Sequence record: LC727697.1 | Direction: 5' to 3' (one strand) | DNA length: 64,000 nt | Shown here: piece after piece, positions 8,007 to 29,181 of the stretch | Layout of the letters: each line of letters opens with the position of its first letter | Position numbering within the stretch: the first letter of the stretch is position 1 | Program-made: the position numbers and the translations under genes | Notes under the pieces: model-generated | What the model was told of the DNA's origin: nothing | Database searches by the model: none | The model's input: only the letters and a program-made list of their open reading frames with translations

Positions 8007-8363
8007 TCAAACGTTAGCTTCGTACCATTCGAAAGAAGATTTAATTTGTTCTACTTCGTTTGAAGTAATTGTTCTCGGAGTAAGAAATTCTTCATACGAA
8101 GACGGTTTAATTTCATTTACGTCGTCTTCTGATTTCAAACCGAGATACTCGCCTGTTTGAATAGAATAAACATGATACATTTGTTTGCCTTGCTTAATTC
8201 CTGCTCGATGCCCGCGGACTACCGAATCAACTACAACGCCATTAGCAGTTGAAATAGGAGTGATAACATTGAGTCGAACAACAATACGGGTATTATGCAT
8301 TTTAATACATTCCTTTCCAAAAATCGTCTTCATCTTGATATGTATCGTATTCATATATGTCAC
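8007..8363 (-). CDS. hypothetical protein
   Basis: ORF ending at terminator; start uncertain. Confidence 0.7.
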   Translation of the reverse strand: MTYMNTIHIKMKTIFGKECIKMHNTRIVVRLNVITPISTANGVVVDSVVRGHRAGIKQGKQMYHVYSIQTGEYLGLKSEDDVNEIKPSSYEEFLTPRTITSNEVEQIKSSFEWYEANV

Positions 8364-8577
8364 GTTGTTTCTTTTTGCGTTTTCTTAATACTTCTTCTCT
8401 AATAGATTTTACATAACCTACTCTACCCGGAGTTTCGTACACATAACAGCGTTTTATCTGAACCCTTATAGGAATTAAATCCATATAATGGTATACTGCC
8501 CAGATATATTTAAAATCATAACCTTTTATAATTATTTTTCTTATAGGTGCTTCTTCGTGCGGAACATCACCGATCAT
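8302..8577 (-). CDS. hypothetical protein
   Basis: 91-aa ORF in operon. Confidence 0.6.
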   Translation of the reverse strand: MIGDVPHEEAPIRKIIIKGYDFKYIWAVYHYMDLIPIRVQIKRCYVYETPGRVGYVKSIREEVLRKRKKKQRDIYEYDTYQDEDDFWKGMY

Positions 8578-12735: not shown

Positions 12736-13055
12736 TTCACTGCCTCGATACCGGCTTCTTGGAGGGCTTCTTCCTGCGCCTTGAGCATTGCTTCGTAGGC
12801 TGGGAGGCATAGACCTCCTATGTAGTTTGTATCTGGGCAGACCACGGCGTCGTAGGTATCTTCCAACCAAGACGGGCACTGCCGCGGCATCGGGACGTAA
12901 TCCTTCATCAGTGCCACACGACTGGCTTTCCAGGCCTCGTAGCGTGCCTGAACATGCGGGTTGAGGTACAAGTCGTCGACTGCATTGTACGCAAGCGGTG
13001 CCGAAGAACGAGTCCGAACCCACGATTCAAATTCTTTTTTCATGTTAGGCTCCAT
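12732..13055 (-). CDS. hypothetical protein
   Basis: EFE.W...Y....VQA.YEAW.ASR pattern typical of prophage accessory genes. Confidence 0.7.
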   Translation of the reverse strand: MEPNMKKEFESWVRTRSSAPLAYNAVDDLYLNPHVQARYEAWKASRVALMKDYVPMPRQCPSWLEDTYDAVVCPDTNYIGGLCLPAYEAMLKAQEEALQEAGIEAVK

Positions 13056-13771: not shown

Positions 13772-13838
13772 GCAAATAAGATTAATTAGTATTTGCTAAT
13801 ATAGATCCAAAAAGAAAGGGAATTATAATTCCCTTTCT
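13772..13838. terminator. operator + intrinsic terminator
   Basis: GCAAAT AAGATT A ATTAGT ATTTGC then AGAAAGGGAA-TTATAA-TTCCCTTTCT. Confidence 0.8.
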
Positions 13839-18823: not shown

Positions 18824-19528
18824 TTACTTGCTTTCCTGCGCCGCCCCGGCGATCGCTGCGTTCTTTTCAGCGACCTTTTCGGCGCGCTCAGCTTCGCGCT
18901 TGGCCTTGCGTTCGTCAGCTTCGCGCTTGGCAGCCGCCGCTTTTTCTTCGCGTTCCTTCTTCTCGGCATCGCGCTTGGCCTTGCGTTCGGCAGCTTCTGC
19001 CTCGGCCTGCGCTTTGCGGTTGATCAGGAAGCCCTTGCCGCTGTTCGCCTTGCCGGCGCCGAGTTCAAAGACGAAGCCCAGGCGACGCAGCTTGTTGCCG
19101 ACGGAAGTGCTGTTCTGCTCGAAGTTGGCCTTGTCGACCCCGTCGAACACCAGGGTAGCTTCGTCGAAGCCGGTGTGGGTGATGGCCGCCTTGACGATCG
19201 CGATCGCGTTGCTGAGCCGGCTTTCGTCGGTGAGCGGTTTCGGACCCTTCTGCCCGGGAACTTTCGGTTCCGGGGTGTACTTGGCCGCCAGTTCCTTGCC
19301 GTCGAGCGCCTGCTCGATTTCGCGGGTGATGCGGATCGCGCTGAACACTTCCTTCTGCTCGAACTGTACGACGGTGCCATCTGCCAGTTCGACTTCGGCG
19401 GTCGCCGACCAGGTGCGCTTGCTCGGGGTGGTGTAAGTAGCCATGGTCTGGCCGATGACCACGCCGTTGATTGCCAGTGCCAGGACGTGCTGTTTGTCGG
19501 TACGTTGACGAGTGATATGTACGGACAT
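18824..19528 (-). CDS. early protein with Ala/Lys/Glu/Arg-rich coiled-coil tail; paralog of 659-1114
   Basis: Strongly GC3-rich codons, GAGG SD, tandem promoters, terminator. Confidence 0.9.
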   Translation of the reverse strand: MSVHITRQRTDKQHVLALAINGVVIGQTMATYTTPSKRTWSATAEVELADGTVVQFEQKEVFSAIRITREIEQALDGKELAAKYTPEPKVPGQKGPKPLTDESRLSNAIAIVKAAITHTGFDEATLVFDGVDKANFEQNSTSVGNKLRRLGFVFELGAGKANSGKGFLINRKAQAEAEAAERKAKRDAEKKEREEKAAAAKREADERKAKREAERAEKVAEKNAAIAGAAQESK

Positions 19529-19611
19529 GTTGTATACCTCTGTAGCTGATGGAAGGATTATGTTGTTTACTTACTACACTTTCGGGGCACTTACCCCTTA
19601 AGCTTGTATAC

Positions 19612-19735
19612 AGTGTAGAGCCTAGTTTGCATTGCGTCAAGCATTTTTTGTTTACTTTCTGCGTTGCTTACTATGTAGCGCTCTACACACTGCGTCTACA
19701 GTTCGCACTTTAAGGTCGTAGTAATGGAAAGTCAA
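19612..19735 (-). promoter_or_regulatory. tandem sigma70 promoters with A-tract UP elements
   Basis: TTGACG-17-TACACT (19612-19640) and TTGACT-17-TAAAGT (19707-19735), both preceded by AAAAAATGC. Confidence 0.85.
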
Positions 19736-19901
19736 GCATTTTTTAAAATATTTTTAAATTATTTTTTACCATCTTGTATACGCGCGCGAGCTATATATAG
19801 CAAGGTCAATCAGTATGGTGTAGAATTATAATTTATAAACAAATCAACTACTTATCTACTATCCATTTCCAAGTATGCTACCAATCCATATACTGGGCAG
19901 T

Positions 19902-20025
19902 GCAAATGCAAATAAGATTAATTATTATTTGCATATTCTTTTTCGTTGCAAATGCAAATACGAATTAGTCTTATTTACAATAACAAATGAAATTACAAAC
20001 GCAAATAAGAATTAGTCTTATTTGC
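19902..20025. promoter_or_regulatory. cluster of three 25-bp Fur-box-like operators
   Basis: GCAAAT AAGATT A ATTATT ATTTGC (19908); GCAAAT ACGAAT T AGTCTT ATTTAC (19954); GCAAAT AAGAAT T AGTCTT ATTTGC (20001). Confidence 0.75.
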
Positions 20026-20029
20026 AATA

Positions 20030-20113
20030 ACAAATGAAATAGAGATGAATAAGGAAATGAATAAGGAAGTGACAAATGAAATAGAGATGAATAAAGAAAT
20101 GAATAAGGAAGTG
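20030..20113 (+). repeat. 42-bp purine-rich tandem duplication
   Basis: ACAAATGAAATAGAGATGAATAA(G/A)GAAATGAATAAGGAAGTG x2. Confidence 0.9.
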
Positions 20114-20132
20114 AATAAGAGAATATCTGCTC

Positions 20133-20410
20133 AAAAAGAAAGGCAAACATAAGTCTGCCTTTCTGATATAAATGCTCCTCAGAACAGTCACGTGCTCTGT
20201 ATCTGGGCAAATTATGCTCGTCAGCACAACGGAGCGGTATATCTTGCCTAAGGAATTGTTATTTGTATAAAGCCCCTTACTCTTTATACTCAGCTAGAAT
20301 ATACAATACTAAGGAATCACTAGCATCATCCTTAGGTCTATCTGGTTATACCAGAATCGACATATCTAAACAACATAGGAGGTATTTACGTATGCAACAG
20401 CGCATAACTT
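20133..20410 (-). ncRNA. candidate structured ncRNA 3 (about 275 nt)
   Basis: Promoter TTTACA-17-TATACT (20417-20445); terminator AGAAAGGCA..TGCCTTTCT-TTTT (20133-20164); several hairpins. Confidence 0.65.
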
Positions 20411-20630
20411 GTATATAGTATATGCATATGTGTATGTAATGTAAATGTTATTTTTATTAATTTACAGATAGTTTCTGTTCTTAATCTTTTCTAAACTATC
20501 AAAAATAAAAGATTAGCCAATGCATCGACAACATGCGCGATTGCATTTTGCATATACACTCAGAACACAAAATGTAAATGCAAAATGCAAATGCGGATCC
20601 GAGTTTGTGCCTAAAATTGAATTTGGAAAC

Positions 20631-20673
20631 CGGAATTGCGATTTAGAATTCCAAAACCTAAATCGCAATTCCG
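20631..20673. repeat. perfect 16-bp inverted repeat
   Basis: CGGAATTGCGATTTAG-11-CTAAATCGCAATTCCG. Confidence 0.95.
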
Positions 20674-20686
20674 AATGGCCGAATAC

Positions 20687-21094
20687 TTACTGATGAATGC
20701 CCATCTGGTGTTTCAGGTACTCGAGGGCGTTGTAGCTATTGCACTCGGCTTCGCTGCGAAGCTGACCTTCGCTTGCCGGGTAATATAGATCGCCTTTGCC
20801 TTGTGCTAGCAAGAAGCACATAGCACGAACGAGACCTTCAGACTGCACATGACTTACAGAAGACATCTGTGCATTGAGAAGTTCGGTGCCGTTAAACTCG
20901 ATGTAGTCGCCGCTTTCGAGACGACTCGCAGCATGTTCACGTCCGGTCTTGCGGTTGAAGTTATCCATTTCCGAACATGCTGCTACGGAAATACGGATCT
21001 TGTTGCCGGCGGTTTCCCAGGCAACAGTAGCGCCACGGCGGTTATCGATCTGTTGAGTTTCTTCGTTGTAGAAACGAATGTGAGTATGTTGCAT
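20687..21094 (-). CDS. conserved-looking phage hypothetical protein
   Basis: G.TVA...A.CS..DNF.RK.GR..A..RL motif; GC-rich codons. Confidence 0.8.
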   Translation of the reverse strand: MQHTHIRFYNEETQQIDNRRGATVAWETAGNKIRISVAACSEMDNFNRKTGREHAASRLESGDYIEFNGTELLNAQMSSVSHVQSEGLVRAMCFLLAQGKGDLYYPASEGQLRSEAECNSYNALEYLKHQMGIHQ

Positions 21095-21129
21095 GTATAC
21101 TATACCTTTTCTAGACCATTAGTTGTTTG

Positions 21130-21537
21130 TTGAGTTTGGGTAGCACTCACCTACCCCCTTCACTGCGAGATTACTAACTGAAGGTTTTGCTTTTACGTTT
21201 AATACATGGTGTAATCTAATATCTTACAGCATGTATACGGTTGCATAGAACTTTATATCATATTAAAGTATTTTAGAAAGGACTGTCTGGGATAGCAACC
21301 ATCACCTACAGCTTCCTGATAGTGCATTCCTTCTAATACACTATCCTACGAGAAAATTTCGAAGGTTCTTTGGAAGTTTTTATGCCCATTCAAATATAAT
21401 GTGTAGGCTATAATGCCTAGGAATGAGCTGGATATTTGTTCTTTACACAGCATCTTCCAACCGTATTTGCCTGTGTATCCTGTAACATCACTGTTACAGA
21501 CTTTTTAACTTACTTAACAAGTAACTGTTTAGTAAGC
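21130..21537 (-). ncRNA. candidate structured ncRNA 4 or long structured 5' leader (about 400 nt)
   Basis: Promoter TAGACA-16-TG-TAATAT (21544-21571); long-range helix, GUGA tetraloop, G-U pair valid only on minus strand. Confidence 0.6.
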
Positions 21538-21602
21538 ATGTATATATTAGCATAATGCACTTATTTGTCTATGGTTATATTGTGTGTTTAGTAGAAAGCT
21601 CA

Positions 21603-22266
21603 TCAATTTTTATACAGGAAATCAATATATACATCTATGCCAGTATCTGGAGGCCAAGGATAAGCCCAACATTCGTTACTAGTAATATCTCCCATCACCC
21701 TTTCACTTATTATATTTGAAATACAGAATATACCTATATGATTTTTTAAATTAGTTAATATAATATATTTGTATGGTTTTGATACAAATATTAATTCACT
21801 AACACCATTAAGATTATATAGCCGTGCCATATCATGTCTTATACTAATATAATCACTAGCACTCGAAAATATTAATATTTCAATCATATGGTTTGTGCAT
21901 ATCCTTTATACATATCCTCGTAAATTCTGATACTATTAGTACCTATTAATGAAAATATAGTTATTCTATCAGCATCTCGAAAATATGTAGGTTTTGAAAA
22001 TCTAAGAATGTCATAAAAATGACAATCTATAAAGTGACATCCTCTTTGCAATTTAAATATATTGAATTTCATACTAGTATACCTGTATCTAAAAATCTAT
22101 ATATTGCAGCGTTTACATAGAATGTTTGATGTATATATTTTGTTATTGCAGGTAATACATATGTAGCGCCTACAGAATAATTATAATAGGTATCATTACT
22201 AATGTATATTCTATTCGATTTCATCAAAATAGATGAAGAATTATAAGACAGATCGAATATATTCAT
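21603..22266 (-). CDS. three small ORFs (21603-21887, 21884-22072, 22069-22266), microprotein family-like
   Basis: EILIFSSASDYI, NIFKLQRGCHFI, NIFDLSYNSSSI; overlapping stop/start. Confidence 0.6.
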
Positions 22267-28384: not shown

Positions 28385-28534
28385 AACTAGTTGTCCTGTA
28401 TATACGTTATACTACGAAATGGAATTATATTAACAAGCGTACAGTAGGTGAGTTGTATAGAGTCACGGTTTATATACGTATAGCATACTATATTCCGTAT
28501 ATGTTATGCAAACGGGAATATATAATGAAACCGG

Positions 28535-28770
28535 CCTATATAGCAAGAATTGGAAATTTTCAAAAAAAATATTTTTTATTGAAAAAGAACTTATATTTTA
28601 TAAGAAGGTCCCTATATAGCAGAAAACGGATTTTTCCAAAAAAAATCTATAAAAATGGTTAGAAATGGCTAGAAATGGAAAGAAAATGGATGTAACTGGG
28701 AAGAATATAAATGTAACTGGAAAGAAAATGGATGGGACCTATAGAGCAAGATTTCCAAAATTTTGGTCCT
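28535..28770. repeat. three CCTATA(T/G)AGCA motifs with A/T tracts and AAATGG repeats
   Basis: Copies at 28535, 28611, 28738, each followed by a TTT(C)CAAAA element. Confidence 0.75.
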
Positions 28771-28814
28771 TCTTTCTTCGGTGATGTTAGGGTTCACCGA
28801 AATATGTACTATAT

Positions 28815-29150
28815 AATTCACTTATTATTTGTACACTATCACTATCTTATTAGTATCACTCAGTATCACTCATTATTTGTACACTATAGCTATCTATCAG
28901 TATTGGTATTAGTATCACTTCTATAAGTATCACTCATTATTCACTATCTATTGGTATTATCAATCAACATTATTCATTATTTGTTACACTATAGCTATCT
29001 CAGTATTAGTATTTTAGTATTAGTATCTATCAGTATTATCACTCATTATTTGTATACTATAGCTATATCTATCAGTATTAGTATTATCACTCATTGGTTG
29101 TTACACTATAGTTTCTATCTATTAGAGTATTATCACTCATTAGTTATAGT
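28815..29150. repeat. imperfect tandem repeats (about 5-6 units)
   Basis: TCACTCATTATTTGT(T)ACACTATAGCTATCT..AGTATTAGTATT recurring. Confidence 0.85.
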
Positions 29151-29181
29151 GTAGTGATTTCTATCATTCATCTTCATTACT

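Follow-up and report, generated by a model that had tools for sequence, protein, structure and literature searches.

Phage PA5oct has four actively transcribed regions without plausible open reading frames (ORFs) (Lood et al. 2020, PMC7318152), one of which is labelled 'putative lncRNA; ncRNA001; annotation based on RNA-Seq data' (EST35_0036; PMC7318152) and accounts for 2.40, 5.07 and 4.68% of the phage reads at 5, 15 and 25 min, respectively (Table 1, PMC7318152). ncRNA1 and ncRNA2 both lie in the terminal repeat and are strongly transcribed all through infection (PMC7318152), and neither has any likeness in GenBank besides phage MIJ3 (PMC7318152). As published, ncRNA001 is a 236-nt feature that comes without a promoter, a structure or a function. 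No promoter has been published for the PA5oct ncRNAs because the promoter search covered only regions upstream of coding sequences (PMC7318152), and the later literature that we searched assigns ncRNA001 no function. ncRNA002, another abundant PA5oct-type ncRNA, is likewise early, structured, free of ORFs and located in the terminal-repeat region.

Two other kinds of bacterial and phage RNA invite comparison. Staphylococcus RNAIII and RsaE are C-rich-loop regulators that mask Shine-Dalgarno (SD) sites, and each of them carries several such loops. The RNA described here resembles this type in having a CCUCC-type hairpin loop able to pair with GGAGG, but it has one such loop only. With the phage and prophage Hfq sRNAs (DicF, VP882 phage sRNAs) it shares its own promoter, a U-tailed intrinsic terminator, a short pyrimidine-rich stretch that is predicted to be exposed in the first hairpin, and one single-stranded A-rich ARN-type motif; in contrast to these sRNAs it has about twice the usual length and is conserved from end to end.

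RESULTS

The locus is a free-standing ncRNA gene orthologous to PA5oct ncRNA001

The window, by which we mean the whole 64,000-nt stretch of DNA that was analysed (LC727697.1), belongs to the Pseudomonas jumbo phage 30-2 (LC727697), a PA5oct-like Wroclawvirus. The 1.2 kb around the locus is 100% identical to phage 30-2 at the same coordinates, and 95-99% identical to ten other Wroclawvirus records, which are PA5oct-like jumbo phages of P. aeruginosa. Over the initial 45 kb of the window every annotated gene lies on the minus strand, and the phage 30-2 record carries no annotation at the ncRNA locus.

The minus-strand unit is 99.7% identical over 326 nt to positions 8203-8528 of PA5oct, the region that bears ncRNA001, and the ncRNA001 feature itself (8263..8498, plus strand) maps through this alignment to 20390..20155 on the minus strand of the window. 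The two RNAs occupy orthologous positions, with the same genes on either side and the same strand relative to them, and both belong to the long terminal repeat. The PA5oct record opens with its 39-kb terminal repeat; base 1 of that record aligns near window position 28783, within a non-coding repeat island (28385-29181), and the ncRNA gene lies ~8.4 kb inward of this PA5oct-type terminal-repeat end. Near the same position two related records annotate a 'CRISPR', which is probably a mis-call of repeats. The locus is a free-standing ncRNA gene, the ortholog of the published PA5oct ncRNA001, and its product is an already known transcript.

The PA5oct RNA-seq was directional, and early transcription lay almost wholly on the ncRNA001 strand (PMC7318152). 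The sequence-only reading of the locus had proposed an independent, non-coding minus-strand transcript and had named stranded RNA-seq as the check; the published directional data on PA5oct place ncRNA001 on the strand equivalent to minus, and the RNA contigs described next show a discrete transcript there. Strand, ends and abundance are taken from these near-identical relatives and not from phage 30-2 itself.

For expression, we mapped to positions 19300-21700 the contigs assembled from four public RNA-seq runs, which come from two studies; such contigs give neither strand nor exact ends. Contigs of all four runs cover 20153-20398. One run yielded an isolated 246-nt contig (20153-20398), the sole other contig there being 21154-21502. 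In the three deep runs the summed word depth reached ~0.45-1.0 million over 20191-20352, while over 20515-20676 it was 1-20 thousand, one to two orders of magnitude below the ncRNA. No contig of any of the four runs covered 19705-19947, and the bins up to 20028 were also empty in three of the four. According to the contigs, the CCUCCU motif considered below is part of the transcript, which ends at the terminator. Two runs carry the PA5oct/30-2 haplotype and two the G20184/C20251 haplotype, so the RNA is expressed by at least two phage strains.

A sigma-70-type promoter and an intrinsic terminator delimit a unit of ~277 nt

A promoter at 20417-20445 and a terminator at 20133-20164 had been read as delimiting ~275 nt, and both elements are present. 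The strong sigma-70-type promoter (20417..20470, minus strand) is invariant in 10 phages: its -35 box TTTACA (20445-20440) is separated by a 17-nt spacer from the -10 box TATACT (20422-20417), and an A/T-rich UP-like stretch (20446-20470) lies upstream. With a score of 10/12 against the consensus it is the best promoter-like site in 19000-21500 in our promoter scan, and transcription in PA5oct is by host RNA polymerase (Lood et al. 2020, PMC7318152). The intrinsic terminator (20132..20164, minus strand) has a 12-bp stem (20164-20153/20148-20137), a 4-nt UUAU loop and a U-tract of five, the first of which pairs at the base of the stem while the other four follow it; its predicted dG is -17.9 kcal/mol (z -5.1). 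We infer from these elements that the RNA starts near 20410 and has its 3' end in the U-tract near 20134 (20134..20410, minus strand), which makes the promoter-to-terminator unit, at ~277 nt, longer than the published feature. That a stable, four-domain RNA of ~277 nt starts at this promoter (~20410), stops at this terminator (~20134) and provides a few percent of the phage transcripts from early to late is, in our judgement, very nearly certain, as each part is either shown here or is a direct consequence of the RNA-seq published for DNA that is 99.7% identical.

If the transcript were the mRNA for a minus-strand micro-protein, one of its ORFs would have to be translated, for example the 19-codon ORF at 20405-20346, whose start lies ~5 nt from the predicted 5' end. 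The ORFs in the RNA sense have 9-31 codons, and those of 19 and 12 codons do start with ATG, but none is preceded by an SD, the start of the 19-codon ORF is buried in a predicted helix and the PA5oct authors saw no plausible ORF (PMC7318152), as we see none here; there are 0 SNPs in these ORFs. Such an mRNA is highly improbable.

The opposite strand offers another coding reading, in which the bases of the CCUCCU motif form a plus-strand SD, TAGGAGGT, followed after 8 nt by the ATG (20392) of an 8-codon ORF (20376..20418, plus strand). All parts of this alternative, which the sequence-only reading had itself put forward, exist as described and amount to a textbook start, and the TAGGAGGT-8 nt-ATG pattern occurs once in the window against 0.06 expected; plus-strand ORFs are moreover called here in the Cassandra, Ettore, Paride, Deifobo and PAC2 records. 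What fails is the strand. Directional RNA-seq has the abundant transcript on the opposite one (PMC7318152), the curated PA5oct, 30-2 and 30-3 records have no plus-strand call at this place, the annotated genes of the first 45 kb all run the other way, and the 8-codon ORF runs into the -10 box from which the minus-strand unit is transcribed. We give hardly any credence to this SD or to the plus-strand ORFs annotated in the relatives. In Cassandra, Deifobo, PAC2, Ettore and Paride (L003, L004, L006, L007 and L010, in this order; locus 1533-1779) these are two 'hypothetical proteins' of 51 and 32 aa opposite the ncRNA, which are almost certainly gene-finder over-calls.

The RNA is the least variable stretch of its neighbourhood

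In an alignment of 10 genomes only 3 of the 277 columns of the ncRNA are variable (1.1%), compared with 107 of 2213 (4.8%) in the flanking genes and spacers (Fisher p 0.0017), and the ncRNA together with the 187 nt upstream has 4 variable columns in 464 (p 1.5e-5). No other stretch nearby varies as little among these genomes.

The known copies are confined to close relatives. Sensitive blastn against 50,697 phage records matched only Wroclawvirus, in 11 records with identities of 99.1% or more, and a BLAST search for a paralog in the whole 287-kb phage record returned only the RNA itself and a terminator look-alike (13808-13838). No diverged homolog was found in IMG/VR by neighbour protein or 28-mer, nor in metagenomes scanned for the neighbour protein of 234 aa, and GTDB genomes gave no match to a 23-mer; a two-motif pattern run on JGI/ENA metagenomes recovered one true copy (L024, 99.6%). 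Within 20134-20410 no Rfam family reached the gathering score and only noise appeared at E up to 10, the unmatched families including 6S, RsmY/Z, CrcZ, PrrF, tmRNA and Pseudomonas sRNAs, and ARAGORN found no tRNA or tmRNA. The other abundant ncRNAs of the phage have no sequence similarity to the ncRNA001-type RNA and lack both CCUCC and CUCCU.

Some 20 gut-phage contigs (~90-100 kb, possibly crAss-like) were considered as carriers of homologs and rejected: they share 12 + 26 nt with the RNA, but the match lies inside a 243-aa coding gene and its spacing and reading frame differ, so we judge it to be a search-selected coincidence. The match (L037:8836-9567; others in L020-L042) falls at the 3' end of the 243-aa gene, and in combination it is rarer than expected.

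The upstream 187 nt are as invariant as the RNA, which would suit a role at the level of DNA, in which the act of transcription from a very strong promoter-terminator unit, or DNA elements, would matter (e.g. for origin activation, as an insulator or for polymerase loading in the terminal repeat) and the RNA would be a stable by-product. The setting provides further points of this kind. The motif TGCAAATGCAAA (at most one mismatch) occurs 12 times in the window against 0.96 expected (e.g. at 574, 19901, 19947 and 20573); 11 of the 12 copies are in the first 21 kb (11-20584), mostly intergenic, some of them on both sides of the ncRNA gene, and the motif may serve the early region in regulation or as part of terminator hairpins. 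Directly past the terminator lies a 42-nt tandem repeat in 2.7 copies, made of 12-nt ATGAATAAGGAA units (20030-20141), and past this stretch three further A/T-rich hairpins of the TGCAAATAAG...CTTATTTGCA type (19907..20026, minus strand), which are built by a 47-nt repeat in the 19901-20133 region and are probably back-up terminators or an insulator. Yet this repeat stretch (19901-20133) is hypervariable: nowhere do the 10 phages differ more, with 9.4% variable columns and indels besides. The transcribed part is under stronger constraint than the coding genes next to it, and shuffled versions of it fold far less well, neither of which a by-product needs. A purely DNA-level role has a slim chance of being correct.

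Several features of the neighbourhood are recorded here in their own right. In PA5oct an 'extensin-like protein' CDS is annotated over the repeat stretch, with its ATG in the terminator loop; it is doubtful because the RNA contigs show almost no expression. The downstream gene at 18824-19528 has 60-63% G+C in a stretch of 25-37% and is the most variable CDS nearby (6.2% of columns), and its counterpart in PA5oct is a virion 'structural protein' by mass spectrometry. On the other side, a perfect 16-bp inverted repeat (20631-20673) behind the gene at 20687-21094 is probably the terminator of that gene, and in Cassandra seven clustered changes (20647-20657) look like a hairpin-loop inversion.

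The RNA is predicted to fold into four domains, with a natural variant that would shift the balance

The 277-nt RNA has a predicted minimum free energy of about -85 to -86.7 kcal/mol (z -4.5 against shuffles), distributed over four modules, the last of which is the terminator. The 5' hairpin domain (20345..20408, minus strand; z -2.3) is predicted to present CCUCCUAU (20382-20375) in its apical loop, overlapping the ACCUCCUA of the earlier reading (20383-20376), and the bases of this loop have unpaired probabilities of 0.95-0.98 in three of four haplotypes by partition function. In the central domain (20247..20336, minus strand; z only -1.4) CCUAAGGA (20336-20329) would pair with UCCUUAGG (20254-20247), leaving a predicted single-stranded AAUAACAA at 20263-20256. 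The 3' domain (20165..20243, minus strand; z -3.7, dG -26.1) is modelled as a three-way junction closed by AGAUAU/AUAUCU, in which GCUCC (20235-20231) is paired with GGAGC (20178-20174), and it contains the U/G polymorphism at 20184. No helix has covariation support because every known copy is at least 99% identical.

The bases at 20329-20336 had been called switch-like for having two possible partners, and both partners exist: in the RNA sense CCUAAGGA has a perfect 8-nt complement at 20254-20247 and a 7-nt one, UCCUUAG, at 20315-20309. This three-way complementarity is only mildly unusual, being seen in 4.8% of dinucleotide shuffles, and the two predicted folds differ by a few kcal/mol. When four natural haplotypes are folded by partition function, a natural SNP at 20251 flips the predicted ensemble, which in silico bears out the switch-like reading. 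With U at 20251 the CCUCCU loop is open and the distal helix forms with a probability of 0.97; with C (Deifobo, MIJ3, 30-3 and Paride) the proximal hairpin dominates (0.87), and ~55% of the ensemble has CUCCU paired to AGGAG (20179-20175), extended by GUAAAU/AUUUAU. The PAC2 haplotype is intermediate between the two predicted folds.

The three SNPs inform the fold to a limited extent. U20251C, which is found in five genomes and in the metagenome copy L024, acts in these models by breaking an A-U pair of the distal helix. U20184G leaves one arm of the 3' junction re-registered, and C20344U (PAC2) changes G-C to G-U in a possible small hairpin. Viable phages are found on both sides of the predicted balance, which would mean either that both folds work or that the central helix is not critical.

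Base-pairing in trans and protein binding as possible modes of action

Our tentative preference, and the most likely mode in our assessment, is that the RNA would be a trans-acting riboregulator and pair with mRNAs. The best seed candidate would be CCUCCU in the apical loop of the 5' hairpin, where it is predicted to be exposed, which could cover strong SD sites of the GGAGG type, sites that are absent from the phage's own early genes. The competing partners of CCUAAGGA would give rise to two global folds, in the second of which AGGAG (20179-20175) would partly mask the CCUCCU loop.

The phage's own messages were examined for complements to the loop. An anti-SD core motif had been noted at 20376-20383, and ACCUCCUA is indeed there in the RNA (20383-20376); the 8-mer itself occurs twice in the window against 0.9 expected and is not over-represented. 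Taken one by one, the motifs of the earlier reading are real but no more than mildly unusual. The complement of the loop 13-mer (at most two mismatches) has 10 sites in the phage, compared with 9 for a control pattern, none of them at a start codon, and the two best (12810-12822 and 101791-101803) are inside coding sequences. Duplex energies of the whole RNA with 94 early translation starts average -13.5, compared with -12.95 for shuffled RNA (z -1.8; 4/120), those of the loop alone give z -1.4, and the best duplexes are scattered along the RNA. The best single duplex, of -23 kcal/mol with the start of the gene at 659-1114, was set aside as a target, since it was matched in 38 of 120 shuffles and the pairing segment is buried in the 3' domain. 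GGAGG is found in none of the RBS regions of 94 annotated early phage genes (0/94), the motifs in these upstream regions being of the AAGGA, AGGAG and AGGTAT types, and the 64 kb have only 14 instances of plus-strand CCTCC, the sequence that minus-strand genes would carry in their mRNAs as GGAGG.

The earlier proposal of a trans-acting anti-SD sRNA thus divides in two: the ncRNA is real and its loop is predicted to be exposed, whereas SD occlusion, though not refuted, is unsupported, as the loop complement is not enriched, the duplexes with early starts barely beat shuffles and the 94 RBS regions hold no GGAGG. Against the loop mechanism there are also four phages in which the loop is hidden in about half of the predicted ensemble. 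We consider it rather unlikely that the RNA works by an anti-SD loop; a preference for strong host-type GGAGG sites is possible. Features of the Hfq type are present, in the form of a U-tailed terminator after an A/U-rich stretch and one single-stranded AAUAACAA, and these are common, not specific.

Base-pairing more generally has to contend with conservation that spans all 277 nt and not a seed only, a pattern that a protein-binding or architectural RNA fits equally well. For this reason, that the whole molecule is conserved, the main rival is a protein-binding role, in which the RNA would serve as decoy, sponge or scaffold and so titrate or organise a host or phage protein, e.g. Hfq, an RNase, RNA polymerase or a ribosomal or defence factor. 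It is like RNAs of the 6S, CrcZ and RsmZ types in its size, in its strong modular fold and in being very abundant throughout, conservation is uniform over the full length and 190 nt upstream, and no significant mRNA target emerged among the phage sites and early starts that we examined. Nevertheless the RNA has no repeated protein-binding motif, and the Rfam search up to E 10, which included 6S, RsmY/Z and CrcZ, gave no match. An RsmA/CsrA sponge would carry several GGA in loops, and here there are two GGA, both in predicted stems; a CrcZ-type Hfq/Crc sponge would carry several AANAANAA motifs, and there is one (20263-20256). Protein binding is an unlikely alternative to the base-pairing riboregulator that we prefer, though the main one.

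DISCUSSION

Taken as a whole, our explanation, a known ncRNA gene whose RNA would most likely work by pairing in trans, is in our view somewhat more probable than not. A more elaborate version, in which the RNA is a conformational mimic of the 3' end of 16S rRNA, one fold soaking up GGAGG RBSs and the other masking the loop, is very unlikely. If it were true, translation would be biased toward phage messages, GGAGG sites being typical of host mRNAs, and which of the two folds prevails would depend on the natural variant at 20251.

To the published annotation our analysis adds the exact boundaries of the unit, from promoter to terminator, and a model of its fold in four domains, together with a natural SNP that is expected to shift this fold and a CCUCCU loop that is predicted to be exposed. 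No new kind of system is shown; these additions give a few hypotheses open to experiment in place of an 'unknown lncRNA'. Virulent jumbo phages make a few extremely abundant ncRNAs. Because this one provides 2-5% of the phage transcripts and no stretch nearby is more conserved, it is almost certain to have some function.
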